In this document: one piece after another, positions 1-64,000 of the stretch
Layout: each line of letters opens with the position of its first letter
How positions within the stretch are numbered: position 1 is the first letter of the stretch
NCBI GenBank assembly: GCA_025558095.1
Contig: JAIVFI010000020.1
Span: forward strand, 645,541-709,540
Length of the DNA: 64,000 nt
DNA from: Hyaloraphidium curvatum SAG 235-1
Lineage: Eukaryota; Fungi; Monoblepharomycota
Reading direction: 5' to 3'
Notes under the pieces: model-generated
Told to the model about the DNA's origin: nothing
The model's database searches: none
Seen by the model: the letters and a program-made list of their open reading frames with translations, nothing else
Position numbers and translations under genes: made by a program

Positions 1-894
1 GTCGGGCCCTTTCGCGCCCGTGGCCGGGTCCGGCGCGGACGAGTAGACCACCAGTGCGCTGCCGGGCAGCGCGACCACGTTGGCGGCCTCGATGATCACG
101 CGGGTCATGTTGGCGGTGTTGTTGTGGCCGATGGACACGGTGTTGCCGGGGAAGATGACGTTGACCGCGCGCACGTGGAGGCGGTACGCGGTGCGGATCG
201 ATGCCTGCCCGTTGGTCCAGCTCGACAGCAGCGAATCCAGCTCCGACATGTCCAGGTCCACGGCGTCCACGGTGTACGACCCGAACGGGCCCGGGTTGGG
301 CTCCACCCGCAGCGCCCAGCGCGCCGCCGACGCCGACACGTTGCGCGCGGCCGCGGCGACCCCGGGGCACCTGTCCGCGCCGAATGTCGACGGCCGCCGG
401 GTGCCCAGGGTCGGGTACTTTGCGGGCTCCGGTACGGGGGGCACGGGGGCGAAGAGATCGGGCGACATGCAGTCGTACGAGACGCGCAGGAACTTGTGGA
501 TGCCGGGGCAGGGGTCGCCCCACATGTCCTCGAAGTTGGCGTCCAGCAGGTAGCTGCAGGTCTGCTGGCCATCGCAGGCCCGGGCAATGTCGACCGCCAG
601 GGCGGCGGAGAGGGCGGGCGACAGCGAGCAGCTGTCCGTCTGGGTGTTGTTCGCCGGCGTCTGGCAGGTGAACGCGAGCGCGGCCTCGCCGGGAATGTCG
701 CGGCCGTAGAACGCGTCCGATATCGCGATGACGCCGCCGCCGCAGGACAGCTGGAGGGCCGTTCCGCCGCACGCGGTCGCGCGGAAGCCGGTGGTGCCGA
801 CGCCCGCGGGCGGACCCGATTGCCGCCGCAGCGGCGCAGCGGACGCCCCCGCAAAGAGGGCGGAAAAAGCAAGGAGGGGAAACAAGAGGCGCAT
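1..894 (-). CDS. Secreted protein with SUEL-type (rhamnose/galactose-binding) lectin domain; runs off the window edge
   Basis: Not in the ORF track. ATG at 894 gives signal peptide MRLLFPLLAFSALFAGASA, then CGGTALQLSCGGGVIAISDAFYGR...CDGQQTC...WGDPCPGIHKFLRVSYDC (SUEL YGR and DPC motifs). Frame stays open to position 1. Confidence 0.8.
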   Translation of the reverse strand, partial: MRLLFPLLAFSALFAGASAAPLRRQSGPPAGVGTTGFRATACGGTALQLSCGGGVIAISDAFYGRDIPGEAALAFTCQTPANNTQTDSCSLSPALSAALAVDIARACDGQQTCSYLLDANFEDMWGDPCPGIHKFLRVSYDCMSPDLFAPVPPVPEPAKYPTLGTRRPSTFGADRCPGVAAAARNVSASAARWALRVEPNPGPFGSYTVDAVDLDMSELDSLLSSWTNGQASIRTAYRLHVRAVNVIFPGNTVSIGHNNTANMTRVIIEAANVVALPGSALVVYSSAPDPATGAKGPD

Positions 895-1507
895 CGTGGG
901 TCGCGGTGTGCTGCTGGCCGCACCGGCCCGGGGGACTTGAAGGGTCGATGGCCGTGTCGCTGCGCCTCGCGTCAGCCGCGCGGGCGGACTTCCTTTCGAA
1001 CGCCGATGACAACCAAGTTCTGCCGGTCCGGCAAGGACGCGAGCTCCATGGATTCTTCTTTCGTTGGATCAACGGCGCCACAGACCCTAGCCACGGTCGA
1101 TCTTTCCGACGGGGCGGGGAGATGGAGGCTTCCCCGCGCGGCCGGCCCGGCGGACCAATATCCGAGCCCATGCTCAAGTTCCAGAGGACCCATCGCAAAA
1201 GTCTGAAACAGTTGAAGTGTTGTAGACTTGTTGCAGCAGCTTCTCTGATTTTTGCGGCGCTCCTGCCGATGGTGCACCGCGTCGGTCGGCGACGAGGTAG
1301 AGCAGTTCGTGGATGCCGCTCATTTCATACCTATTGCTGATTGCGATGACGGATCATGTCAAAAGCAACCTGGAGCACTATGTCGGAACGCAAGATCTCT
1401 AGCTTTCGGGGCTGTTGGAAGGCAGCATCGTCCCCGTAGTGTGCGCAACCTGCGTGCGCGCGCGCCTGCCCAGGTGGGCCGCCGAGGACAACCAACAAAC
1501 AGGCGCG

Positions 1508-2903
1508 ATGGCCACCGACGCCGGCCCGTTCCGGCTCCTCCATTCTCTCCCCGTGGAGCTCGTCATCCAGATCGTATTGCGCTTGCCGGCCGAGGACGTC
1601 GTGCGCCTGGGCTTGGCGGACCGGCGGCTGCGGGAAGTCGCGTGCGACCCGCAGGTCTGGCTCCGCGTGCTGGCCGCCAAGGGTCTCGGCTGGCTCTCGG
1701 TGGACGGCGCCGCCGCGCTTCTGAGGCGCGTGGGCGACGCGGTGCCGCAGCTGGCGGCCCTCCGCGGGCCGGACGCGGTCGCCACGGCCTTGAAGGTTCT
1801 CTATTTCTGGCCGCGCTCTGTGGGCCGGGACGCGCCGTCCGAGCTCGACTCGGTGTGCAGACACATCTCTTTCATCCGCGAGCGCGAGGTGTCCGAGTAC
1901 GCCTCGGTCTTCGCCTCGGTGGTCCTCGACACCCCCCTGGCCTCGGACGCGGCGTGCATGGGCCCGCCCGGCCCGCCGCTTCCGGACGACGAGGGCAACG
2001 TCGACCCCGCGGACGCGAACGGCACACCTTGCAGTTACTCCCTGCCGGATCTGTGGCTCTGCCTGGCCCCGGGGTGCGGCTCGGTGCGGTGTGGGAGGAC
2101 GTGCAGGCTGCACGCGCTGGGGCACTACCACCGCGAGAAGGGGCCGCACTGCGCCGTGATCAAGCTGTCCACCGCCGAAGTTTGGTGCTACCAATGCGAA
2201 CGATGGCTGGGGACGGTGCAGTCGCACCCGCTCGAGTTCCTGCGGATCCGGGAGGTCGGCGCGAGGATGCTCGGAGTGGACCGCCCGGGCGTCGTGGGAA
2301 ACCTCCAGGGCCCCGCCTTGGGCAACGGTGGCGCCGTTGGGCGGGCGATCCGCTGGAGTGCCGCTCACAGAGAGTACCTGCTCAACCCGCGGCGGCAGGA
2401 GGAGAGATCGTGGTCGATGCGCGGGGACCAGGGTGACGGCCCGGTGTGGCTGATCGGGCAGCCGTTCCTGTCGCAGTGGAACGCGTGGGTCGCTGCGTGC
2501 CGCGTGCTTTGCGACCGACTGATTCCCTCTTCGCGTGGGCAGCTTCCTGATCGGCAACGGCCCGCCCCCCGAGTCGGCCGACCACGCCTCCCTCTACATC
2601 CCCGGCACCTCGCCGCCCCGGATCAACCCCGAGCTCGCCTTCCTCGGCGTCAGCTTCGTCTCGGCCCACGACCGCGCCCGCTTCGCCGCCGCGTACCCCT
2701 CGACCGGCCTCGGGCCCGTCTGCGAGACGGCGATCCCCGACACCGAGGAGTACACCGTGCTGAGGCGGTTCGTCGCCAGACACCGGCTGGCGAATGCAGA
2801 GTGGCAGGGCGACGACATGGAGGGGGAAGGCGAATGGGAGGGGGACGATTTCGACGATGAGGCCGAGGTGATGGAGGCTTTCCAGCAGTTCATGGGGATA
2901 TGA
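1508..2903 (+). CDS. F-box + ZnF-UBP (+ probable DUSP-like) protein
   Basis: F-box LPVELVIQIVLRLPAEDVVRLGLADRRLREVACDPQVW; ZnF-UBP LWLCLAPGCGSVRCGR..HALGHY..H..VWCYQCE. GT-AG intron 2485-2542 joins SQWNA-FLIGNGPPP; acidic C-terminal tail. Confidence 0.8.
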
Positions 2904-3169
2904 GGCGGGGAGGGGTGGGGCTGCGGCCTGGGCGCTTTGTGTTCCGGTGACTTCGAAGTTCTTGTACACGGCTTGAATATTGTCGCTGCCAACATTCAGT
3001 CTTCGAGTGCGAGCGGCATCGGCGCCAGGGTCCGCCCGCAGCGTGTTGGCGCAGCGTCCCCAGCAACACGGCGACCTTGACGGCGACCCCTCAAACATAC
3101 TGGCGGCCCTCTCCGAGCCCGCCGCGGCCGGTGCCCTGGACTAAAAGCGGCTTTAACCGCCGTTCCCGC

Positions 3170-4410
3170 ATGGCGTCGGCGCCGCCGTCCCGCGGGGAGC
3201 GCGCGCGCGGGGTCGCGCTCACCGCGGCGGGCATCCTCGCGTCGTTCCTCGTGTACGGCGTCGCGCAGGAAAAGATCATGACGACCCCGTACGGCGAGGA
3301 CGGCGAGCGCTTCGACGAGACGGCGTTCCTCGTGCTCCTCAACCGCCTGGTCGCCGTGGCCCTCGCCGCCGCGCTCATGTGGGCCAATCGGGCCACCGAT
3401 AAGGACCAGTTCGCCCCGGCCGCGCCGCTGCGGAGCTACCTGGCGATCGCCGCGTGCAATTTCCTGTCGACGTTTGCGCAGTACGAGGCGCTCAAGTATC
3501 TGTCGTTCCCGATGCAGACGCTGGGCAAGACGGGCAAGATGGTGCCCGTGCTGCTGATCGGCGCGCTGCTGCAGGGCAAGAAGTACGGCGCAGTGGACTA
3601 CGCGACGGTGGCGGCCGTCACCCTGGGATCCTTCCTCTTCATCACCTCGGGCGAGATCCGGTCGTCGTTCCACCCGCCGCGGCCGCACGACACGTTCGCG
3701 GGAATGCTGCTGCTAGCGCTATACCTCTTCTTCGACGGGTTCACCACAACGTCGCAGGAGCGGCTGTTCAGAGCGTATGCGATGTCCGCTCCGCACCAGA
3801 TGTTCTGGGTGGGCGCGTGGGCCGTCGTGCTCAGCATACTTCGTGGGTGATGCACAGGCCCGGGCTTTCCCCCCCCCCTCACCTTTCAACCAGTCCTCCT
3901 CTTCCCCATCGATACCCTCCTCACCACGGGCACCCTGGAGCACAACAAGCTCGGCCCCGCCGTCGCCTTTGCCGCGCGCCATCCCGCTCTCTTGGCGGAC
4001 GCCCTGGTGCTCTCTTTCGCGGCCACGGCGGGGCAGGCGCTGATCTACTTTTGCATCCGCACCTACGGTGCCCTGGTGCTGTCCACCAGTACGTCCCCCC
4101 GCGCTCGCACGCCCCGCTTTCGCACGCTGACCGCCCTTCAGTCCTCACAACGCGCCAGATCATCTCCATCCTCCTCTCCGCCCTCATCTTCGCGCACCCC
4201 ATCACCCCCGCGCAGTGGCTCGCCTTCGCCGCCGTCTTCGGCGCGCTGTACTTCCGCGCATTCGCGCACCGCCGCGGCGAGCCCGCGGGGGGGAAGCCGC
4301 TGCCGCTGCTGCCGCTGCAGGCTAAGAGCTCGGATGATATACTGCGCATCGGTGGGGAGGGGGAGATTGGGGTCGCGGGGAACGGGGTGGGGCGGGAGGC
4401 CGGGCGCTAG
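3170..4410 (+). CDS. UAA-family nucleotide-sugar/PAPS transporter (SLC35B-like), 2 introns
   Basis: GVAQEKIMTTPY, QYEALKYLSFPMQTLGK..KMVPV, YLFFDGFT, GQALI, TTRQIISILLS motifs; multiple TM segments. Confidence 0.9.
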
Positions 4411-4480
4411 AGGGTTCATGCCGACATAGAGCGATACCAATGATGTATATCTGGCTCGTCCAATGCTGTGTCGAACTAGA

Positions 4481-5396
4481 CTACAGTTTGAACTGCTGCT
4501 GCTTCGCGACGACGCCTAGTTCTGCAATGACGTGGTCAGCCTGCGCCAGCGACTGCCGCTGGGCCCGGCAGAGACTCACCACCGAAGTAGCGGACAAAGT
4601 TTACGGGCCGCTCTGATACGGGCTTCTTCCCGCCGCCGTCGATCCCGAGCAGGATGTCGCCCAGCGCCTTGCATTCCCGGTCGTTGAGCGCGAGCATCTC
4701 GTCCCTCCACGGCTGCGGCCGGAGCATGGCCTTGGTCGCGAAGAGGGCAGCGGGGGAGAGCTGTGCGAGGGGCACGATGTCCTTTGCCATCGCCGCGTCC
4801 AGGATGCTGGGCGTCGATGCGGGGAAGATCCGCGTAACGAAGCTCCCCGCGGCCTCCTTCGCCGTTATCCTGTTGGCCCCCACGAGGATGTCGAACGCCC
4901 TGCGCTCCCCGAACAGCCGGGGAAAGATGGCCGTCGAGCATCCGCCGGGGGGCACGCCGACCCTCGTGAAGGGCGCCAGGAGGCCCGCGTCCTCGCGCGC
5001 GTAGACGAAGTCCGCGAGGCCGAGGGTGGTGAAACCGAACCCGATCGCGTTGCCATTCACCGCCGCCACGAGGATCTTTGGGAAGGCGATCATGGACCGC
5101 ACCAGCTCGCGCCAGACGGCGAGCCCGGCCTCGAGGTCCGCGTCCGTGATCTTCTCCAGCGGCACCTTGAGCGCCTCCGTCTCGATCCCGGAGCAGTAAA
5201 AGTTCCGCCCGTTGGCGGCGTCCTGGCCCGTCAGAACGAGCACGGAGCAATCCGGGTCCCCGGCGGCGCGCCGGATTCCGTCCAGCCATTCGAGCATCGT
5301 CGAGGGGAGCGCGGCGTTGCGCGAGGCGGGCCGCGAGAAAGTGAGGACCGACACGCGAGTCTTGGGATCGTTTCGGTACGGCATCGTCGAGGCCAT
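4481..5396 (-). CDS. Crotonase-fold protein, ECI2/delta3-delta2 enoyl-CoA isomerase-like; C-terminus FKL after splicing
   Basis: FPKILVAAVNGNAIG, DFVYA, PFTRVGVPPGGCS motifs. Intron 4579-4522 (GTGAGT...GCTGAC...GCAG) adds a last exon 4521-4481 encoding ELGVVAKQQQFKL*. Confidence 0.85.
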
Positions 5397-5568
5397 GGTT
5401 TCGGCCGCGATTCGGGCTCGATGAACGATTTGAATGTCCAGAAGCGATGTCTCCCGGAGCCGCGGCGATCGGCGCGGAAGGATCTGGACGAGTCGTCCAC
5501 AAACACCACCACCGGCATCTCGCTCTGGCCCGTCTGCCCTGCGAATCCCTCCCAAACACCTTCTTGCA

Positions 5569-6079
5569 ATGTCGGACAAGAAGATTTCTCGCGCGGAGGT
5601 GGCCAAGCACAACACGCAGGTGGCAGCGGCCGCCGGTCTACCGCCTCTTCCCGGCTCAACGAAACCGCTGGAAATGCCCTATCCCCCCCCCCACCGGTCG
5701 CGCGTTTGTTCGCTTCGAATCATCTCAGGACAGTGCCTGGATCATCTTGGATGGAGGCGTCTACGACTTGACGAAGTTCATGAAGGTTCGTGTTCAGTCG
5801 ACCTGCTATCTCCCACGCTCTCGACAATGACACGCCGACTCCTCGCAGGTTCACCCCGGAGGTGAGGGCCGGACGCGTCTGCCACTTTTGTGGCCTCGTT
5901 GCCGCGGACTCCGTGTCAACCAAACGTTGTCCTGCCCCGCAGGCCCGAAACCCATCCTCTCGTTCGCCGGCCGCGATGCCTCGCTGCTCTTCCACCAGGT
6001 CCACGAGCACATCATCGGGCAGGTCACCAAGAACCGGGCACGCATGCAGATCGGCGTCGTCTCGGACGAGAAGCTCTAG
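5569..6079 (+). CDS. Small soluble cytochrome b5 (4 exons), ends EKL
   Basis: Exons 5569-5619, 5729-5785, 5849-5861 and 5943-6079 give MSDKKISRAEVAKHNTQDSAWIILDGGVYDLTKFMKVHPGGPKPILSFAGRDASLLFHQVHEH...IGVVSDEKL; HPGG heme motif; no TM tail. Confidence 0.9.
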
Positions 6080-6112
6080 TGGAATGTGATTGGGACGCAG
6101 ATTCGCGGCCGT

Positions 6113-8817
<2,705 letters not shown>

Positions 8818-9071
8818 TGCAAGGCCGCGTTGGAAGTCCGCAAACCGAATCTAGCGTCCTTCGCGGGCCAGAGAGAGTGTTCCGTATTCCGAAGTTGCCG
8901 CCGAGCAAGGACCACGCGGTGCGTCGCGCATCGCAAACGTCTCCCATCCGAACTTGCCTCTTCTCCGGTGGCTATCAAGACCATCCTGCCCATCGCTTGC
9001 GCTACATTGGTTGCTGGACCGCTCTCCCGCTCCCCCTAGTTCACCCTTTCTCTTGCGGCCTCTGGAACGCG

Positions 9072-11218
9072 ATGGCGTCGCCAGCGCGGAAACGCCGGCC
9101 CTCTTCGTTCCGCGGATCCTACTCGGACGATGTCCACGTCTCCGCCAAAGAGATCGCGACAGACGTGCTGCGGTCTCTCGGATTCGGCGACGACGTAGTC
9201 TCCCAGCTCCTGGGCCGCGTCTCAATCGCCGGTCCCACCGAGCCCTTCCTCCCCTGCGTCTTCCGGGTGACCGACGCGATGACGGCGCTCCAGCTCAGCG
9301 TGGCGTCCCTTGCCAACCTCTGGGGTCTGCGGAGGAACGGCTACCTCCAGGATGTGCGGGTCAGCACCGAGACCGCGAGCATGCAGTTCTTCAGCGCCTT
9401 CTCGTTCGAGATATCCGCCCGGAAGATGTTTCCCAACCTGCCGGGGCCCGAGGACAGGCCGCTTTTATGGAGGGAATGGACGCCGTCGCTGACGGGTTTC
9501 GCGGAGCCCGACGTGACCGCGCGCTTTGGGTCCGTCTACTGGCAGCTTTGGGAAACGGGAGATGGCCGCTATGTCTTCGTGGGTCTCGCGAAAGCACGTA
9601 GAACGAAGTCCCCAATTGATACCCTCGTCTGCTCTAGCTCTCTCCCTTCATCAACCCGTACCCCCCGGAGAAGCTCCTCGAGCTGGTCGGATTCCAGCAG
9701 CCCGAGATCCCGCGCTTCTTCTCGCTCCTCGAGAAGGACGAGGGCATCCCCGAGGCCCTGGAGGCCATGCGCCGGGCCCTGAAGCGCATCCCCTCGGCGA
9801 TGGACCTCGAGAAGGCCATGTTCAAGGAGAAGGCCGGCGGATGCTGGGCCATCAAGACCCTGGACGAGTTCCTCGACGGCGACCAGGGGGTCTGGAGCGC
9901 GGCCCACGACCAGATCCACGTCGAGCAGGTCGGGACCGACAAGTGGGGACCCGCAGGATTCGGCGAGCCGGTCAAGGAGGGCGAGGGGCTGTACAAGGGG
10001 ATCAAGGTCGTGGAAATGACGCGGATCGTGATGGGACCGGTGTGCGTTACATTTCGCCGGTTGCTTTGCTTGAACCTAACGACATTGGCCCCACAGGATC
10101 AGCTCCTTCCTTGCCAACATGGGCGCCGACGTCGTGCGGATCGCTTCCGAGACGGTCAACGAGATGCCCAACTGGAACTTCACCCAGACCACCAACAAGC
10201 GCTGCATCGCGCTGAACCTGAAGGACCCGAAGGACAAGGCGGTGATGGACCGGCTGCTCGACGAGGCCGACGTGGTCCTGCAGAACAACGCCTACGGGGC
10301 CGTCGAGCGCCTCGGCTACGGGTTCGACGACCTCTGCAAGAGGTTTGCGAACCGCAAGAAGGGCTTCGTGTACTGCGAGGGCAACTCGCTCGGTTTCACG
10401 GGCCCGTGGGCATCTTCGGGAGGATTCGATCAAGGTAACGTCCGCTATCGCCCCATGCGGCGTCATACATGTCTAACGGCGTGCAATCCAGTGGGGCAGA
10501 TCTGCTCCGGCGCCGCCTTTGCCATGGGCCGGGAGGTCCACGGCCACGGAGAAGGAGCCGGCCCGGCCGGCGTCAAGCCGCACTTCTTCCCGAGCACCAT
10601 CTGCGACGCCACGACCGGCATGTCGGGCGCCGTGGGCCTGCACGCCGCGCTCTACCGCCGCGCGACGGAGGGCGGGTCGTACCGCGTCCGGGTCGCCCTC
10701 GCCCGGTCGGGGATGTTCTATCAGGAGCTGGGGATGTACCAGAGCAAGGCGCTGCGGAAGAAGGTTATGAGCAGGTGCGGGATCGGCGGCGGAGGTGGTT
10801 CTGTTTGCCCGACTAATTGGCATCGTGAACTTCTTTGCGCAGATTCGAATACCTGGACCCTCTGCCCGACCCGAAGGCCCGCTTTTTCGGGGTCATGGAC
10901 GCCTTCTTCCAGTATCATGAAGCCCTGCGCGACACCATGCCCCACCTGTTCTCCGACGAGCACTGGATGCGGTTCCGCGACTCGCCGTTCGGAGGGGTGC
11001 CCCTGCGCATCGTGCGCCCCGCCTTTTCCCTTTCGCGCAACCCGGTCGCCGTCCGCATCCAGCCGCGACCGCTGGGCTACGACTCGACTCCGGCGAGCAG
11101 GATCGCCATGAGGGGGGAGCTGAGGTGGCTCGATGAGCAGGCTCGGGATGTGGAACGGGACGGGGACGAGTGGTGGTTCAGGACCGTCGAGGGCGGTGCG
11201 GATAGCGCGAAGCTGTGA
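9072..11218 (+). CDS. Class III CoA-transferase (CaiB/BaiF family), ends AKL
   Basis: YKGIKVVEMTRIVMGP, LANMGADVVRI, NKRCIALNLKDP, EADVVLQN, GPWASSGGFDQ, PSTICDATTG (catalytic Asp position); C-terminus GADSAKL*; ~4 introns. Confidence 0.88.
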
Positions 11219-26088: not shown

Positions 26089-28801
26089 CTACAGCTTCGG
26101 CGCGGTCTCCTTGTAGCGCACCTCGAAACCCTCGAACTTGCCCGTCTGCATCACCATGTCAGCGAGCCGTCTCCCATCCCGGCCGGCAAATAGCGACCCA
26201 CCTTCTTGATCCGGTCCAGGTGCCCGTACATCCTGTCGCGGTACATGATCGGCCCGCCGCCGTAGTTCTGCGCGCGGTTGACGACCTTCCGCAGCAGCGC
26301 GATGTTGCCCTCGGCGTTGTCTGGGGAACGGGACGACGTCAGCCCTGCACCACCGCACAAAAACGGAGAACGGACAGTAGCCAGGCGTACAACCCTCCCT
26401 GAAGTCGTAGTTCTCCTTGCCCGTCGCCAGCACCTCCCTGGTCCACTCCTCCTCCGCCTCCCTGGTGACCTCGAGCACGTCCACCCCCCTCCTCACGGCC
26501 TCTGCCAGCACCCCGGCGCCGAAGGTGGCCTGCAGCGAGAAGGTCGAGGTGAAGTTGGGCGAGTTGCTCGCCTGCGCGGCGCCGAAGGAGAAGCAGTTGG
26601 GGAAGCCGTGGGTGCAGGTGCCGAACAGGGTCGCGAAGCCGTCGCGGGTGTGCTTCTCTTTGGGGGTCAGCCCCTCCCGGCCGACGATGCGGTAGTCGGC
26701 CTTGACGTCGATCACGGTGCTGGGAAGGGGGTCAGATGGATGCGAAGGTGCGGGCGTGGGAAGACGTATACCCCGTCACGGTAAACCCGGTCGACCTGTT
26801 TGGGCGAACGTCAGCGCTTCCATCGAGATCCCGTGCCGGCACGGGCCTACCAGATGATGCAGTCCGTCTGGTACTCCTTCCCGTCCACGACGACCCCGCG
26901 CGGGGTGATGGCCTCGATCCCCTTGGCGTTGGAGCAGTCGACCAGCTCGACATTGGGCCTGTTGAAGCTCGGCAGGACTGGCGGGGCGGGTCAGCACGGG
27001 TCCGGCGAGGGTGAGAGGGCACACACATTCGTCGCTGTACACCGGCCTCTTGCACCTGGAGACCGTCGACGAATGAGCGGCGGGGCGTCCGGCGGCAGGA
27101 GAGCACGCACCAGAGGTTGTACCACGGCTTGAGCGCCTCGGCCGTCTTCTTGTCCTTGACCGTGTCCTCGACGCGCTTGCGGAGGCGCTGCATGAGGCGG
27201 TAGTCGCCGAGCTGGTAGAGCTGGCCCGTCGACTGTGCGCGGAACAGTCAGCTCCAGACAGAGGCGCCGAGGGCGTCGGCGCCGCCCGCCGTCCACGCAC
27301 GTATTTCTGCCCCTCCTCGTCCTTGTACCACATCTTCCTGTTGGCGTACGCGAACCACTCCTGGAACGAGTTGCTGAACCCGTCGTCGATGGGCTCCTTG
27401 CACCCCGCCACGGCGCCCTTCTGGAACTTCTCGTCGCGCGCCGCGTGCCAGCCCTTTTTGGAGGTCACCTCGCGCCACCACGCGGGGTCCGTCGACGCGT
27501 TGGCGCGGATGTCGACGGCCGAGGGGGTGCGCTGGAAGACGAGGAGCTTCTTGGCGGATTTGGCGAGGTAGGGGATGCACTGGATGGCAGTGGCTGGACG
27601 GCAGGCAGTCAGAATGGCCGACGGGAAAGGGGAGCAAGACGGGCAGACCTCCAGTGCCGATGATGGCCACGGTCTTGTCGTTCAGGCCCTTCATGTCGTA
27701 GTCGCCCGTCATGGGGTTGCCGCCGGTGTACTCATAGTCCCAGCGCGCGGTGCTGGACCATCGATGTCAGCGGGACGAAAGGGTGGTAAGAAGGCGAAGA
27801 AACCCACTGGAACTCCTTGCCCTCGAACGAGTCGATGCCGGGGACGTCGGGGAGGTGCGGACAGTTGAGCGCTGTGGGTATTGAGTCGCGCAAAGACGGG
27901 TCAGACTCAAACGAGCCAACACGAGCGACCGACCACCCACGTCCGCCGCAGACGAGCAGCCACTTGGCCGCGAACTTGTCACCCCTGTCCGTGTAACCCC
28001 TCCACACCCTCCCCGCGTCGTCCCACTTGGCCTCCACGACGCTCGTCTGGAACATGGCGTTGGGGTACAGGTCGTAGTGCTTGGCGATGATCTGGGCGTA
28101 CTTGAGGATCTCGGGTGCGCCGACGTACTTGGCGCTCGGCATGTAGCCCGTTTCCTCCAGCATGGGGAGGTACTGCCGGCGGGATCAACTGATCAGGGCG
28201 GGACGGGTCGGGCGGCGCGACGAGACCCACGCAATAGGCTTCCGAGTCGCAGGCGGCACCGGGGTACCGGTTCCAATACCAGGTCCCGCCAAAATCGCCA
28301 GCCTTGTCGATGATCTTGAAGTCCGTGATCTGCAGGGCGGTCAGAAGGCTCGCAAAGGGGGTGGGGGGAGGACGGCGACGCACCCCGGCCTCCTTGAGCT
28401 TCCCGCCCAGCAGCAGCCCCGAGAACCCGGCGCCCAAAATCACGGCCTCGGTGGTAAACTCCTGCGCCGGCCGCTCGACGTATTTCGTCCACGGGTCCGT
28501 GAGCCAGTGCTTGAACTTCTCGCCCTTGCCCTCGCCCTTCCCGGCGTCACGTCAGCGGACGGCGGCGGCGGCGCAGCGGCGGCACCCACGACGGTAATGT
28601 ACTGCTCGCTGCCATCGGTGCGGATCCGCTTGTCCCTTTCGGCCCTGTAGCGGGCCTTGAGCTGCGGCGGTCGGCCGGCGAGTCAGGAGGCGGGCTGGGA
28701 GACACCGCGTGCGGCGGCCGGCGAACCTCGTCGGGGTCAAAGTCGATCTTCCAGATGTCGTGCGGGAAGCGCTTCGTCGCGTCCTCGGTCGCCAGCGCCA
28801 T
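26089..28801 (-). CDS. Type I Baeyer-Villiger monooxygenase, intron-rich, ends PKL
   Basis: [21 protein letters not shown], FEGKEFHxARWDY fingerprint, IIGTG, VFQRTP, CKRP, CTPGY; C-terminus YKETAPKL*. Confidence 0.9.
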
Positions 28802-54622: not shown

Positions 54623-57000
54623 CTACTCGTCCCACCTCATCCTCCCGCCGCCCAGCCACGTCTCCAGGATCGGGATGGACTTGATCTCGTCGGGCGGCAC
54701 CTCGAACGGCGACTTGGCCAAGACCACGAGGTCCGCCGACTTGCCGACCAGCAGCGAGCCCGTGATGTCCTGGAGACCAGACTGGATCGCGCCGTTGATG
54801 GTGACCGCCTTCATCGCCCTGTCGCGGGGAACGGCCGCGTGAGCCGGAACCGATCGAGTAGACGGAGAGCACGGCGGACACCCACTCCTCGACCGGGACG
54901 CACTGCTCCGGCCCGAGCACCTTGCCGTCGTAGAAGTTCTTGCGGACGACCGCCGTCTCGACGTACTGCAGCGGCTGTATCGGCGTCACCGGGTTGTCTG
55001 CCGGCCCGAAGCGCCCGCCGTCAGCCCTTCCGAACCCGTCGAGCACGCCCTCCAGCTCGTCACCCACCGCAGTGCATCGTCCACAGCACGTTGTGCTTGA
55101 TGCAGTCCCCCGCCGGATCCATCCTCTCCGCCCTCTCCGCCCCGTGGATCTTGTCCCTGTACGTGCTCCCCCAGTACAGCAGATGCTGCATCAGGAAGCT
55201 CGGCGACACGTTCAGGGCGCGCATGCGGGCGACCTGGTCCTCGCGGCAGATGGTGCAGTGCTCGATGCGGCGGCGGAAGCCGCGGCCGGTGTAGATTTCG
55301 GATTCCTGGGCGGGGCCGAAGACGGTGGAGAAGGCGTCGAGGGCCTGGTCAATGGCGGCGTCGCCGTTGGCGTGCTGTGGGGCAGCAACCCAGATCAGTG
55401 CGTCAACCTAGTTGCGAATGGCGATTGACGTGCCCAACTGGGTGCAACGCACCATCATGGCGCTGAACCCCGCCTCCTTGACGGCTTTGGTGAGTTCGAT
55501 CAGCTTGGCCTGGTCCGGGAAGTTGGGCTCCCCCACGCTGTCCGGGTGCACCTTGTACGGCTTGGTCTGGTAGGCCGTGGCCGTCTGGTTGGTCCCTAGA
55601 CGTGGGCACCGGATCAGTTCCGTCCGACTCTCCGGCCAGCAGGGTGCGGCCCACCGTCGAGGATGAACTTGATCGCGTGCAGGCTCACGAGCCCCAGCTC
55701 GTCCCGCCCGAAAAACACAGGCTCCCCCGGCGCCGCCTGCCTCCCCCCCCTCATCACCTCCACCGCGTCCCCCACGGCGGTGTACCACGGGCTCAACCCC
55801 ACGCGGCACGGCAGCCGCGCCTCGTTGACGAGCTGCAGGTACGCGCCGACGTCGCCGGCGAGCGAGCCGGCCTTCATCCCCATGGCGGCGTCGACGACGG
55901 TCGTGCAGCCCTTTTTGGCGGCGCGGGTGAGGAAGCCCTGGAGGGCGGAGATGATGAGCTCCGGGGAGGGGAGGGGGAGGATCTTGCGCATGTTGACTGG
56001 GCCGGCGGGAGGGGGTTAGCGTTCTGCAGTGGGTGGGCCGGACACGGGGGAAGACCCACAGACGGCGTCCTCGACGATGACGCCGGTGAGCTTGCCGTCG
56101 GGCCCGCGGCGGTACTCGTGGTCGCCCTTCACGGACTCCTCCGTGATCCCGGCCATCTCGAAGCACTTGGAATTGCAGTACCTGACCGAGGAGGCGCGGA
56201 TCAGCGCGCCCCGACACCCGGCAAGAGCCCGCGGCAGGACGCACCCTGTGTGGAGCGTGTTGGAGGTCACGTAGATCGGCCGCTTTGTCGGAATCCCGTC
56301 CAGGTCCGCCAGCGTCAGGGGCCGGTACGGCGGCGTGAGCGCCTCGTCGTACCCGTTGCCGAGGCACCACGCGTCGTCGGACAGCCCCTGGGCGTCCATC
56401 TCGGCGGCGCGGGCGGCGAGCCGGGCGACAGCGTCCGCGGCAGAGGAGACGGTGAAGGGGTAGAGGTCGACGGTGGTCTCGTGTATGATGCCGCCCATGG
56501 TCGGGTGCATGTCTGTGGGTGTCCACGTTGATGTCAACTGAAAGCACAACAGCGCTTCAAGACGCGGAGTCCACCCACGTGGCTCAAAGAACCCCGGCCC
56601 GACGTACTTGTCCCCCAGATCCACCACCTCTACGAACCCGCCGCTGCCGAACTTTCCCACGATCTCGTCTTTGCCCCCCACGCCCAGTATCTTCCCCGCC
56701 AGCGAGATCGCCACCGCCTCCGCCCACGGCCTTCCGGCGTCCGCCGTCCACACCTTGCCCAGCACGATGGTCCGCACCTCGTTGCCGTCGGGCGGCGGCG
56801 GCGGGATACCCCCGCGCAGCCTGAGGGTATTGTCGGTCGGGAGCGCGAGCTGCTCCGCGAACTTTGCGGTGGCCTCGTCTGCGGGCGGAGTCAGCCTGGC
56901 GCGTTTGTCCCCATCGAAGCGGCGCACCCGAGATCAGCCCCGCGGCCCACGAGCAGATGCAGCCCGAGTGCGCGTGGCGGTGCGGCGGCGATGCGGCCAT
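54623..57000 (-). CDS. Amidohydrolase_3 (YtcJ-like) metal-dependent hydrolase
   Basis: WAEAVAI, DLGDKYVGPGFFEPHMHP, GKLTGVIVE, HANGDAAID, RIEHC, NPVTPIQPL, GSLLVGKSADLVVL, ETWLGG; many introns. Confidence 0.9.
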
Positions 57001-59431: not shown

Positions 59432-61399
59432 ATGGGATCGGACTCGGGCGACGGCGAGGTGGAGGCGGGCCACGCGGTCTGGCTCTCGCCGGAGGGTCGA
59501 GGACGCACGGCGGCTGGGGAGTCGTCCGGTCCCTCCTGCCTTCCGCGGCCTACGGGGCCTGCGGGCGAAGCGATGGTCGCCTCTGATGGCCGCCGAACGC
59601 CAGAATGGGGCGCAATTGCGGCGGAGGCCGAGGCTTGGCGGCGCGGCGCTGCGCGGGGGGAAACGCCGGCGCCCGCGGAGTGGCCGACAGGGGACGGCGG
59701 CGAGGCGACTCCCTCGGCACCGGCGACGCCCCTGGCCGCGCGGACCGCCGAGGACGGCGACGAGGAGGTTCCCTCCGCTTGGGACCCGCCCGCGCCGGAT
59801 TTCCCGCCGCCGCCACGCGACCCCATGGGCGCGCCCCTCCCGGTGGCCGACCTGATGCTCGGCCTGGACTCCTTTTGGCAACGGCTGCACACCACTTTCC
59901 CCGTCGTGCACCGCGCATCCTTCGAGGCGGCCTTCACGCGCCCCGGCGGGCCGATGCCCGGGACACCTCTGTTTCCGCGAGGCGCCCCGCTGATGCTCCT
60001 GCACACGCTGGCCGGCTTCGGCGCCCTGTTCCTGGAAGAGGTGCCCAACGCAAAGCGCGCCGCCCTCGCCAAGGCGTGCTGCGAGCGCGCCAAGGTCCTG
60101 GCCCTGGCGACGTTCGACACCCTCCCGGCGCGCGACGACCTCGAGCTGGGCCTGGCGTGCTACTACCTTGTCGGGGTGGCGGTCGTGGCAGGGCAGCCCG
60201 CAGCCGCCGCTCCGCTCATACGCCGGACGGCCGAGACCGCTGAAGCCCTGTTCCGCGCACTCCCGCAAGGCCCGCCGCAGACGGCGGCGGCGTGGCTCTG
60301 GCGCGAGTGCGTGCTCCGCCTCCGGATCGGAACCGCGCACGCCGACATTGGCCAGGCACACCTCACGGGTCTGCCGGCGTTCGGGAACTACTTCTCCGGC
60401 GCCTGCCCGCTGCCCTCCCCGGAGCCGTACTTCGAGGCCCGCGACGGCGGGGCGGCCTTCTCGATGGCGCAACTGCTGTGGCTGGCGGGCGAGCCCGTCG
60501 TAGATTTCGGGCGCGACCCCTCCTCGGGTGAAGCCCTCGTCGGGTGCTCCGCCTCCCTGGCGCGCCATGCGCTCTCCACCTCTTCGTCAACTGCGCTGTA
60601 CCAGCTCGCTCAGCTCCTCCGGCACGCCGCGTGCGAGGCGCAGCACCGCGCGCCCGCCTACGAGCTGTCCGCCCGCACGTGGGACGTTTCCTTGGCACTG
60701 GACGCCGCCATAGGTGCCATGCCGGCCGACGTCCGCGGCCCCCTCTCCAAGGGAGACCCTGGACCGTTCCTGGACCACTGCACCGCGCACCACGGCGACT
60801 TCCCCCACGCCTCCGCCGCCCTGCAGTGCGTGGTCCTCTGCTTCGGCCTCGTCGTCTTTGCCTTTTCCGAGGCCGGGATGCCCGTCCAGGCCGTGCGGCG
60901 CTCCCTCGTGCTCGCCGGGCTGCTCTCCGGCCTCGCGAAGCGCGACCCCACCTTCGCCACCGCCTCCTTCGCCATCGCCGTGCCCGCCTACGCCGCCGGC
61001 CGCGCCGTACTCCGCTGCATCCGCGAACCCCCGGCCAGCTCGCGGCCCGAGGCGCTGTACCCCGCCGCGCGCGAGCTCTGCGCGGCGCTGGAGCTGCTGG
61101 CCGCGAGGATGGGGCTGCAGGTGCGCAGGGTGGCGGCGGTGTTTGCCGCCGAGATGGACGAGGCAGGGGTGCCGCCCGATGCGGGGTTCTTTGGGGAGCT
61201 GCTGGGGATCGAGGCGGGGACGCTTGCGTCGAGAGGCTTCTCGGGGGGGCTGAGGAGCGCGACCCTTTCCGCCGAGGAGGAGGCCGCTGAGGTCGAGGGG
61301 CCGATGGACGAGGCGGATGCGCCCGAGGGGAGAGCTTACAGCTTCATGGATCGCGTGGCGATGGCCCTGCGGGCGAGGCGAGCCCCGGTTGCGGGGTAA
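59432..61399 (+). CDS. Fungal-TF middle-homology-domain protein without a visible Zn cluster
   Basis: GLDSFWQRLHTTFPVVHRASF, LLHTLAGFGA, WRECVLR, CPLPSPEPYF; intronless; last gene before the telomere. Confidence 0.7.
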   Translation: MGSDSGDGEVEAGHAVWLSPEGRGRTAAGESSGPSCLPRPTGPAGEAMVASDGRRTPEWGAIAAEAEAWRRGAARGETPAPAEWPTGDGGEATPSAPATPLAARTAEDGDEEVPSAWDPPAPDFPPPPRDPMGAPLPVADLMLGLDSFWQRLHTTFPVVHRASFEAAFTRPGGPMPGTPLFPRGAPLMLLHTLAGFGALFLEEVPNAKRAALAKACCERAKVLALATFDTLPARDDLELGLACYYLVGVAVVAGQPAAAAPLIRRTAETAEALFRALPQGPPQTAAAWLWRECVLRLRIGTAHADIGQAHLTGLPAFGNYFSGACPLPSPEPYFEARDGGAAFSMAQLLWLAGEPVVDFGRDPSSGEALVGCSASLARHALSTSSSTALYQLAQLLRHAACEAQHRAPAYELSARTWDVSLALDAAIGAMPADVRGPLSKGDPGPFLDHCTAHHGDFPHASAALQCVVLCFGLVVFAFSEAGMPVQAVRRSLVLAGLLSGLAKRDPTFATASFAIAVPAYAAGRAVLRCIREPPASSRPEALYPAARELCAALELLAARMGLQVRRVAAVFAAEMDEAGVPPDAGFFGELLGIEAGTLASRGFSGGLRSATLSAEEEAAEVEGPMDEADAPEGRAYSFMDRVAMALRARRAPVAG

Positions 61400-61639
61400 T
61401 GCAGCCCGTATCTGTGATGCAGCGATTGTTCCAGTATACCTGGCCACCTCTCACGTTGTCGTCTCTGGATGTCGTCGCATTGGACCCACCAGGCCCTGCT
61501 GAGCCTCACCCAACGCCCCCCCGATGCTCCCCTGACGCTCCCCCGATGCTCTGCGATGCTCCTTGGAGCTCCAAAAGGCCCCTCAAGCATTGCCCTTTCC
61601 TCCCCAGTGCAGAGCAGCTGTTCCTGTGCTTCAAACTGG

Positions 61640-61712
61640 GCGTCGTCCCCGTCGTCCCCGTCGTCCCTGCCCGTCGTCCCTGCCCGCCGTCCCTGCCCGT
61701 CGTCCCTGCCCC
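61640..61712. repeat. Subtelomeric short tandem repeat (CGTCGTCCC / CCGTCGTCCCTGC)
   Basis: About six degenerate 9-13 bp units directly visible. Confidence 0.75.
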
Positions 61713-61914
61713 ACTGCCGCACAGCATCGCCGAGTTCGCCTTCACGCACACGATGTCGTCAAACTATGCTGGGGGCGCGCCGGATTGTTCACCAATCCTC
61801 AGCCAACATCAGGAAATCCTTCGAGTCCATCCACAGACATCAGGAAGCAGCTCGAGGCTCCCAGATGCTCGAGATGCTACCAGAATCCGAGAAGACAAAT
61901 CTGGTGACATACAG

Positions 61915-62098
61915 AGGTTAGGTTAGGTTAGGTTAGGTTAGTTTAGTTTAGTTAGGTTAGGTTAGGTTAGGTTAGGTTAGGTTAGGTTGGTTAGGTTAGG
62001 TTAGGTTAGGTTAGGTTAGGGTTAGTAGGGTAGGTTAGGTTAGGTTAGGTTGGTTAGGTTAGGTTAGGTTAGGTTAGGTTAGGTTAGGTTAGGTTAGG
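61915..62098 (+). repeat. Telomeric array (TTAGG)n
   Basis: ~35 pentamer units, G-rich strand running 5'->3' towards the end. Confidence 0.92.
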
Positions 62099-62100
62099 GG

Positions 62101-64000
62101 AGCGCGCGCTCTGCCTCCGAGCCGGTGGGGGGGGGAGAGAGGAAAACCGAACGAACCTAACCGAACCTAACCTAACCGAACCGAACCTAACCTAACCTAA
62201 CCTAACCGACCTAACGAACCTAACCTAACCGAACCTAACACCCTAACCTAACCTACCTAACCTAACCTAACCTAACCTAACTAACCTAACTAAACTAAAC
62301 TAACCTAACCTAACCTAACCTAACCTCTGTATGTCACCAGATTTGTCTTCTCGGATTCTGGTAGCATCTCGAGCATCTGGGGCCTCGAGCTGCTTCCTGA
62401 TGTCTGTGGATGGACTCGAAGGATTTCCTGATGTTGGCTGAGGATGGTGAACAATCCGGCGCGCCCCCAGCATAGTTTGACGACATCGTGTGCGTGAAGG
62501 CGAACTCGGCGATGCTGTGCGGCAGTGGGGCAGGGACGACGGGCAGGGACGGCGGGCAGGGACGACGGGCAGGGACGAGGGACGACGGGGACGACGCCCA
62601 GTTTGAAGCACAGGAACAGCTGCTCTGCACGGGGAGGAAAGGGCAATGCTTGAGGGGCCTTTTGGAGCTCCAAGGAGCATCGCAGAGCAGGGGAGCGTCA
62701 GGGGAGCAGGGGGGGCGGGGTGAGGCTCAGCAGGGCCTGGTGGGTCCAATGCGACGACATCCAGAGACGACAACGTGAGAGGTGGCCAGGTATACTGGAA
62801 CAATCGCTGCATCACAGATAGGGCTGCATTACCCCGCAACCGGGGCTCGCCTCGCCCGCAGGGCCATCGCCACGCGATCCATGAAGCTGTAGCTCTCCCC
62901 TCGGGCGCATCCGCCTCGTCCATGGCCCCTCGACCTCAGCGGCCTCCTCCTCGGCGGAAAGGGTCGCGCTCCTCAGCCCCCCCGAGAAGCCTCTCGACGC
63001 AAGCGTCCCCGCCTCGATCCCCAGCAGCTCCCCCAGAAACCCCGCATCGGGCGGCACCCCTGCCTCGTCCATCTCGGCGGCAAACACCGCCGACCCTGCG
63101 CACCTGCAGCCCCATCCTCGCGGCCAGCAGCTCCAGCGCCGCGCAGAGCTCGCGCGCGGGGGGTACAGCGCCTCGGGCCGCGAGCTGGCCGGGGGTTTCG
63201 CGGATGCAGCGGAGTACGGCGCGGCCGGCGGCGTAGGCGGGCACGGCGATGGCGAAGGAGGCGGTGGCGAAGGTGGGGTCGCGCTTCGCGAGGCCGGGAG
63301 AGCAGCCCGGCGAGCACGAGGGAGCGCCGCACGGCCGGACGGGCATCCCGGCCTCGGAAAAGGCAAAGACGACGAGGCCGAAGCAGAGGACCACGCACTG
63401 CAGGGCGGCGGAGCGTGGGGGAAGTCGCGTGGTGCGCGGTTTGCAGTGGTCCAGGAACGGTCAGGGTCTCCCTTGGAGAGGGGGCCGCGGACGTCGGCCG
63501 GCATGGCACCTATGGCGGCGTCCAGTGCCAAGGAAACGTCCCACGTGCGGGCGGACAGCTGTAGGCGGGGCGCGGTGCTGCGCCTCGCACGCGGCGTGCC
63601 GGAGGAGCTGAGCGAGCTGGTACAGCGCAGTTGACGAAGAGGTGGAGAGCGCATGGCGCGCCAGGGAGGCGGAGCACCCGCGGAGGCTTCACCCGAGGAG
63701 GGTCGCGCCCGAAATCTACGACGGGCTCGCCGCCAGCCACAGCAGTTGCGCCATCGAGAAGGCCGCCCCGCCGTCGCGGGCCTCGAAGTACGGCTCCGGG
63801 GAGGCAGCGGGCAGGCGCCGGAGAAGTAGTTCCCGAACGCCGCAGACCCGTGAGGTGTGCTGGCCAATTCGGCGTGCGCGGTTCCGATCCGGAGGCGGAG
63901 CACGCACTCGCGCCAGAGCCGACGCCGCCGTCTGCGGCGGGCCTTGAGGGAGTGCGCGGAGAACAGGGCTTCAAGCGGTCTCGGCGTCCGGCGTATGAGC
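62101..64000 (-). other. Fold-back: adapter-like spacer, (CCTAA)n and an indel-rich inverted copy of ~60220-61914; likely assembly artefact
   Basis: Mirror of the preceding sequence, including the GTTTAGTTTA telomere variants, with scattered 1-nt indels that break the ORF. Confidence 0.85.

Follow-up and report, generated by a model that had tools for sequence, protein, structure and literature searches.

Four adjacent genes with peroxisomal-type C-termini in Hyaloraphidium curvatum: a candidate lineage-specific cluster around a Fox2-derived dehydrogenase

Do four neighbouring genes whose predicted products all end in xKL belong to one peroxisomal pathway, or do they only share an address? 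The question is raised by a stretch of 64,000 nucleotides (the window) of Hyaloraphidium curvatum contig JAIVFI010000020.1 (assembly GCA_025558095.1), which encodes a crotonase, a cytochrome b5 (b5), a double short-chain dehydrogenase (SDR) and a class III coenzyme A (CoA)-transferase. The quartet is real but lineage-specific, and it is not kept intact in relatives. All four proteins appear to be peroxisome-directed, as judged from their predicted ends. With confidence that stands about level, we read them as peroxisomal matrix proteins of a lineage-specific cluster that would feed a non-standard carboxylic acid into beta-oxidation, with the divergently arranged CoA-transferase and double dehydrogenase genes as its probable core.

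A preliminary description of this DNA had placed the four families in two head-to-head pairs and had proposed a co-regulated peroxisomal module that activates, rearranges or hydrates, and oxidises an unusual acid, with b5 as electron carrier. Its arrangement was confirmed, with identical starts and spacings (172, 33 and 254 bp) and the same four C-terminal ends in the public models, and the families it had named are supported for all four genes. The public annotation contains exactly four genes here, flanked by a UAA-family transporter and a protein kinase, and the crotonase exon is a 100% match to an H. curvatum public protein. The start codons lie at 5396 (minus strand, crotonase), 5569 (plus, b5), 8817 (minus, SDR) and 9072 (plus, CoA-transferase), and the stop codons end at 4481, 6079, 6113 and 11218, respectively. 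Translated exon by exon, all frames are open and all introns are GT-AG except for a single GC-AG. Codon totals for the crotonase (285), b5 (85) and the SDR (627, with the last intron at 6290-6232) equal those of the public models. In the case of the CoA-transferase, our own model has 635 codons and the public one 620, and both end in AKL. The cause is intron 4: the public model excises about 110 nt (about 10764-10873), whereas the alternative preferred here, 10775-10842 (68 nt), preserves the frame, contains CTAAT as a branch site and lengthens the protein by 15 residues. Searches were made per exon with our own spliced models, and full-length comparisons used the public proteins. The features are as follows.

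4481-5396, minus strand: ECI2/PECI-like crotonase, 285 aa, FKL end; exons 4580-5396 and 4481-4521.
4522-4579, minus strand: terminal intron of the crotonase gene, 58 nt, GTGAGT...CTGAC...CAG, yielding the last exon that bears the peroxisomal targeting signal type 1 (PTS1); also present in two relatives.
5397-5568, no strand: divergent intergenic region between crotonase and b5, 172 bp, a putative bidirectional promoter.
5569-6079, plus strand: stand-alone cytochrome b5, 85 aa, EKL end; exons 5569-5619, 5729-5785, 5849-5861 and 5943-6079.
6080-6112, no strand: convergent gap from the b5 stop to the SDR stop, 33 bp.
6113-8817, minus strand: double short-chain dehydrogenase with Fox2/MFE-2 domains A and B, 627 aa, AKL end, 14 exons.
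Exons 1-7 of the SDR, minus strand: 8807-8817, 8670-8696, 8321-8570, 8141-8263, 7959-8080, 7819-7904 and 7392-7766.
Exons 8-14 of the SDR, minus strand: 7310-7332, 7035-7253, 6850-6978, 6723-6795, 6558-6668, 6291-6506 and 6113-6231.
8697-8806, minus strand: first SDR intron, GC-AG, 110 nt, its position kept in relatives with a GT donor (contig L005) or a GC donor (contig L008).
8818-9071, no strand: divergent intergenic region between SDR and CoA-transferase, 254 bp, a putative bidirectional promoter.
9072-11218, plus strand: class III (CaiB/Frc-type) CoA-transferase in which PF02515 is partially duplicated at the N-terminus, 620 aa in the public model and 635 aa in ours, AKL end.
Exons of the CoA-transferase in our own model, plus strand: 9072-9578, 9638-10041, 10097-10434, 10492-10774 and 10843-11218.

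No FarA site or oleate response element (ORE) was found in either of the two putative promoters of the quartet.

The C-terminal ends are FKL (crotonase), EKL (b5), AKL (SDR) and AKL (CoA-transferase). AKL conforms to the strict PTS1 consensus, and FKL and EKL do not strictly do so. An example of EKL-type targeting is yeast Faa2. EKL has been described as a non-canonical PTS1 (PMC7829553). The FKL end hinges on intron 4522-4579, and the crotonase end is the only one of the four that relies on a short last exon. The crotonases of two environmental relatives (contigs L001 and L002/L003; 63-66% identical) share the terminal intron and the last exon, which starts with ELG. An unspliced crotonase ending in AGAG was also considered and was rejected, as the spliced last exon is conserved in the relatives. 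These orthologues end in SKL (L001) and SRL (L002/L003), the SDR orthologue (L005) ends in AKL, and the b5 orthologue ends in GKL. Because the crotonase orthologues carry canonical PTS1s, there is strong evidence that FKL is a drifted PTS1; the conserved KL end of b5 is suggestive only as a peroxisomal signal. Canonical ends in the crotonase and dehydrogenase orthologues thus support the peroxisomal signals of the preliminary description. Among the 8 other genes around the quartet, none has an xKL end (7 ends are readable, one of them SKM). At an assumed per-gene rate of 1-3%, a genome of 15,000 genes should contain four xKL ends in a row about 1e-4 to 1e-2 times by chance, an improbability that supports a non-random adjacency of these non-paralogous enzyme genes. 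Separately from the quartet, two other reading frames in the window that are rich in G+C at third codon positions (GC3), at 26089 (minus) and 47899 (plus), end in PKL and VKL, have no Pfam match and are putative gene ends. About 3-5.5 kb before window position 1 (L004 18370-20888) lies a group of a small SDR, a SnoaL-like gene and an alpha/beta-hydrolase, the last with a PTS1-like SKM end.

By sequence, the double SDR is Fox2-derived and is not a full MFE-2. It matches 2ET6, the dehydrogenase part of Candida tropicalis MFE-2, with E 6.6e-166 and has YxxxK in both SDR domains (residues 162 and 478); no match to a hydratase-2 (MaoC) domain was found in the protein or anywhere in the window. The motifs of domain B are canonical, while the motifs and loops of domain A are altered both in the window SDR and in its relatives. 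The GC-AG intron of the window gene is validated by the L005 relative, which has the same first intron. In a quick IQ-TREE run on a 186-column region, in which deep branches are unresolved, the window, L005 and L008 SDRs group as one clade (98 by the Shimodaira-Hasegawa-like approximate likelihood ratio test, SH-aLRT). A metagenome scan with an alignment of the SDR linker hit nothing but short stretches of the generic NAD-binding start. Hydratase-less double SDRs can also be found in other fungi, for example Gonapodya (596 aa, AKL end), Trichosporon (597 aa) and Hohenbuehelia (603 aa), and the last of these adjoins a separate MaoC gene.

The divergent partner of the SDR matches PF02515 with 163.5 bits (cut-off 23.3; E 1e-47). 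The profile is matched twice, by residues 40-201 (profile 135-273) and by residues 289-501 (profile 2-210), and Asp455 (encoded at 10605-10607) corresponds in the alignment to the motif Asp of formyl-CoA transferase. The protein scores far below every cut-off of the NCBIfam equivalogs and fits no named subfamily. Matches in bacterial genomes are 27-36% and cover the C-terminal half only; the one inspected is an ordinary single-domain CaiB. A single-sequence AlphaFold model has a predicted local distance difference test score (pLDDT) of 35.7 and is unusable.

The crotonase can be modelled well (pLDDT 93.7), and ECI2/PECI is its closest match both by sequence (E 1e-27) and by fold (template modelling score, TM, 0.74-0.78). 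In ECI2, the Glu of the SPEG loop is taken as the catalytic base. Enoyl-CoA hydratase 1 has two catalytic glutamates, Glu144/Glu164 in the rat enzyme (PMC5651017). The window protein has no acidic residue at any of these three positions, with Thr123 and Phe143 in place of the hydratase glutamates and Gly151 at the ECI2 position, and both orthologues likewise lack an acidic residue there and have Gly in place of the ECI2 Glu. The 63-66% identity kept in relatives indicates that the gene is under selection. Because its catalytic residues are replaced, in both orthologues as well, it is best described as a conserved protein that is no standard isomerase or hydratase. The b5 matches PF00173 (E 1e-21), retains both axial histidines (His38 of HPGG, and His61) and is soluble, with no membrane tail. 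Its orthologue has exon junctions matching those of the window gene.

From these parts, a mechanism can be proposed. The CoA-transferase would attach CoA to a free acid with no need for ATP, by way of an aspartyl anhydride formed at Asp455, the mechanism of its family. The SDR, going by its homology to 2ET6, would then oxidise a (3R)-hydroxyacyl-CoA to the 3-ketoacyl-CoA with NAD+. Since the hydratase-2 domain is missing from the SDR, the likeliest entry substrate would be an acid that is already 3-hydroxylated, or else a hydroxyacyl-CoA supplied by a separate hydratase. The thiolase step would be encoded elsewhere. Since the crotonase keeps an intact ECI2 fold but has no catalytic acid, its most likely role is to bind or shuttle acyl-CoA, or to perform chemistry that needs the oxyanion hole only. 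The b5 may be a soluble haem carrier for a peroxisomal flavo- or metallo-enzyme encoded elsewhere. In this scheme the gene models, folds, motifs and orthologue ends are observations, and the location, joint expression, reactions and substrate are predictions.

On L005, three consecutive genes (1-5785) have PTS1-like ends.

Stop at 625: gene without a Pfam match, ARL end, lying beyond the synthetase.
782-2671, minus strand: acyl-CoA synthetase, PKL end, head-to-head with the SDR.
2822-5785, plus strand: double SDR, AKL end, followed at its tail by a glutamine synthetase-like gene.

On L008, an enoyl-CoA hydratase with both glutamates intact and a PKM end (168-1210), a crotonase other than that of the quartet, is the immediate upstream neighbour of a double SDR from this clade. 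The SDR thus recurs beside enzymes that might supply a 3-hydroxyacyl-CoA, and it is twice divergently paired with a predicted CoA-activating enzyme, of unrelated families. The scope of this pattern is three or four lineages at most. As a tentative proposal that we consider doubtful, a specialised, hydratase-less Fox2 dehydrogenase of the Hyaloraphidium lineage may act as a hub that repeatedly gathers interchangeable substrate-supplying peroxisomal partners (CoA-transferase, acyl-CoA synthetase, hydratase); the H. curvatum version would be a new catabolic pathway that includes a non-canonical crotonase and a free matrix b5. Two further loci are worth recording. In Gonapodya sp. JEL0774 (L009 4758-14287), a hydratase-less double SDR (AKL end) has a single SDR as its head-to-head neighbour, and an AMP-binding gene, a PhzF-like gene and a gene for 132 aa with a CKL end lie nearby. 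In Hohenbuehelia grisea (L041 6231-14985), two tandem double-SDR genes are followed by a separate MaoC hydratase-2, which is either a split Fox2 or an annotation split.

A number of points weigh against reading the quartet as a single peroxisomal cluster. A conserved module of the four genes was not borne out: none of the testable window junctions is kept in L001, L002, L005 or L008, environmental relatives that show 56-70% identity on short contigs (0.5-12 kb) and whose orthology is uncertain. The crotonase of L001 (12 kb) and L002 lies beside a zf-UBP gene, as in the window, and in L001 also near a UAA gene; b5, double SDR and CoA-transferase were not found near it on these two contigs. The L005/L006 and L008 genes are possibly paralogues from one sample. 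No CoA-transferase orthologue was found by a word search with exon 1 or in the Joint Genome Institute (JGI) metagenomes, blanks that do not prove absence, and neither the AKL end nor the linkage of this gene is replicated in relatives. Its class III family also includes racemases. None of FKL, EKL, GKL, PKL and PKM satisfies the strict PTS1 consensus as given in PMC8140964. Finally, no word of up to 10 nt shared among the compared promoters beat shuffled sequences after 21 comparisons were counted.

The best-surviving alternative is a loose neighbourhood of peroxisomal but functionally separate proteins, which have no more in common than lipid-responsive chromatin or bidirectional promoters within pairs, and in which the SDR works in general beta-oxidation as one half, the dehydrogenase, of a split Fox2. 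That no tested junction is kept fits such an arrangement, as do the double-SDR loci of Gonapodya, Trichosporon and Hohenbuehelia, where the quartet partners are missing, a b5 without a redox partner in the cluster, and the lack of a dedicated regulator or transporter between the UAA transporter and the kinase. Against it stand the improbable run of xKL ends, SDR relatives that again adjoin PTS1-like acyl-CoA enzymes, and altered domain A motifs that suggest specialisation. We consider this alternative possible, if on balance improbable.

The full four-step module of the preliminary description, in which the transferase activates one acid, the crotonase isomerises or hydrates it, the SDR oxidises it and b5 carries the electrons, is unlikely. 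Two divergent pairs within 6.7 kb, xKL on every product, and a crotonase that is under selection with ECI2 as its best match would all suit it. Yet Thr123, Phe143 and Gly151 stand where catalytic Glu/Asp residues should be, in both orthologues alike, which leaves a hydratase or isomerase role unsupported, and the linkage of crotonase and b5 is missing in two relatives. To our knowledge, none of the CoA-transferase, SDR and crotonase families, NAD-linked SDRs included, uses b5, so its part as electron carrier of the module finds no support. What stands of the earlier interpretation is the families, the signals and the non-random adjacency; a conserved module, a hydrating crotonase and a b5 carrier are not supported. 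The members do deviate from standard beta-oxidation enzymes, as had been noted, yet the SDR (Fox2/MFE-2) and the crotonase (ECI2) derive from ordinary peroxisomal beta-oxidation families. Chance adjacency, or wrong splice models giving spurious xKL ends, is very improbable and largely refuted: FKL does depend on the splicing of a last intron, neither FKL nor EKL is canonical and the scan was post hoc, but an independent public annotation concurs, the terminal exon and PTS1 of the crotonase are conserved in relatives, and the remaining three ends are encoded by terminal exons that look coding (GC3 0.80-0.97).

Elsewhere in the window, a long inverted duplication (60414-63804; 92-100%) has arrays of (TTAGG)n and (CCTAA)n (61915-62098 and 62150-62326) facing each other at its centre. 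It resembles a read that folded back or fused at a telomere and is probably an assembly artefact; the facing arrays suggest that the telomere unit is TTAGG (5 nt). Between 41836 and 53998 lie two sugar/MFS transporter genes and a Zn2Cys6 regulator, which together with an amidohydrolase at about 56019-56933 are possibly a separate uptake and catabolic group.

Few descriptions exist of catabolic gene clusters in early-diverging aquatic fungi. A limited literature search turned up no cluster made up of these families and no report on peroxisomes in Hyaloraphidium. The locus offers three testable leads: a soluble b5 whose xKL end is conserved, an ECI2-like crotonase that is conserved although it has no catalytic acid, and a guilt-by-association handle for an orphan type of class III CoA-transferase. 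If it holds true in complete genomes, partner swapping around the SDR would clearly exemplify clusters whose members are set by organelle and step in a pathway, not by a fixed gene set.

How, then, does the quartet compare with known systems? Like Fox2/MFE-2, the SDR has tandem A and B domains with a linker, NAD-binding and YxxxK motifs and a PTS1 (about 52% identity to Coemansia Fox2); unlike them, it is without the C-terminal hydratase-2, has atypical domain A loops and sits among other peroxisomal genes. The crotonase shares with ECI2/PECI (PDB 2F6Q, 4U18) an intact fold, its closest sequence match and a C-terminal PTS1-type tail, which in yeast Eci1 is HRL (PMC12273641), but it has Gly for the SPEG Glu, no ACBP domain and about 30% identity. 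The CoA-transferase has PF02515 and the catalytic Asp motif in common with class III Frc/CaiB enzymes, including the fungal N-terminally extended CaiB/BaiF type, but it is partially duplicated, falls below the equivalog cut-offs and has no close relative among those found. The b5 has the HPGG motif and second His of its family, but is an 85-aa soluble protein with no anchor, an EKL end (GKL in the orthologue) and no cluster partner. The quartet should be classed neither as MFE-2 or ECI2 nor as a conserved cluster. A parallel in organisation is Aspergillus hcsA-katA, linked genes for the peroxisomal beta-oxidation of hydroxycinnamates that are conserved in 37/50 Eurotiomycetes (PMC8140964). Both systems place a peroxisome-targeted CoA activation next to a beta-oxidative step, act on a non-fatty acid and leave the remaining steps elsewhere, features that for the quartet are predicted from its genes. 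The hcsA-katA families are a synthetase and a thiolase, which differ from those of the quartet, and the quartet is seen in one genome.

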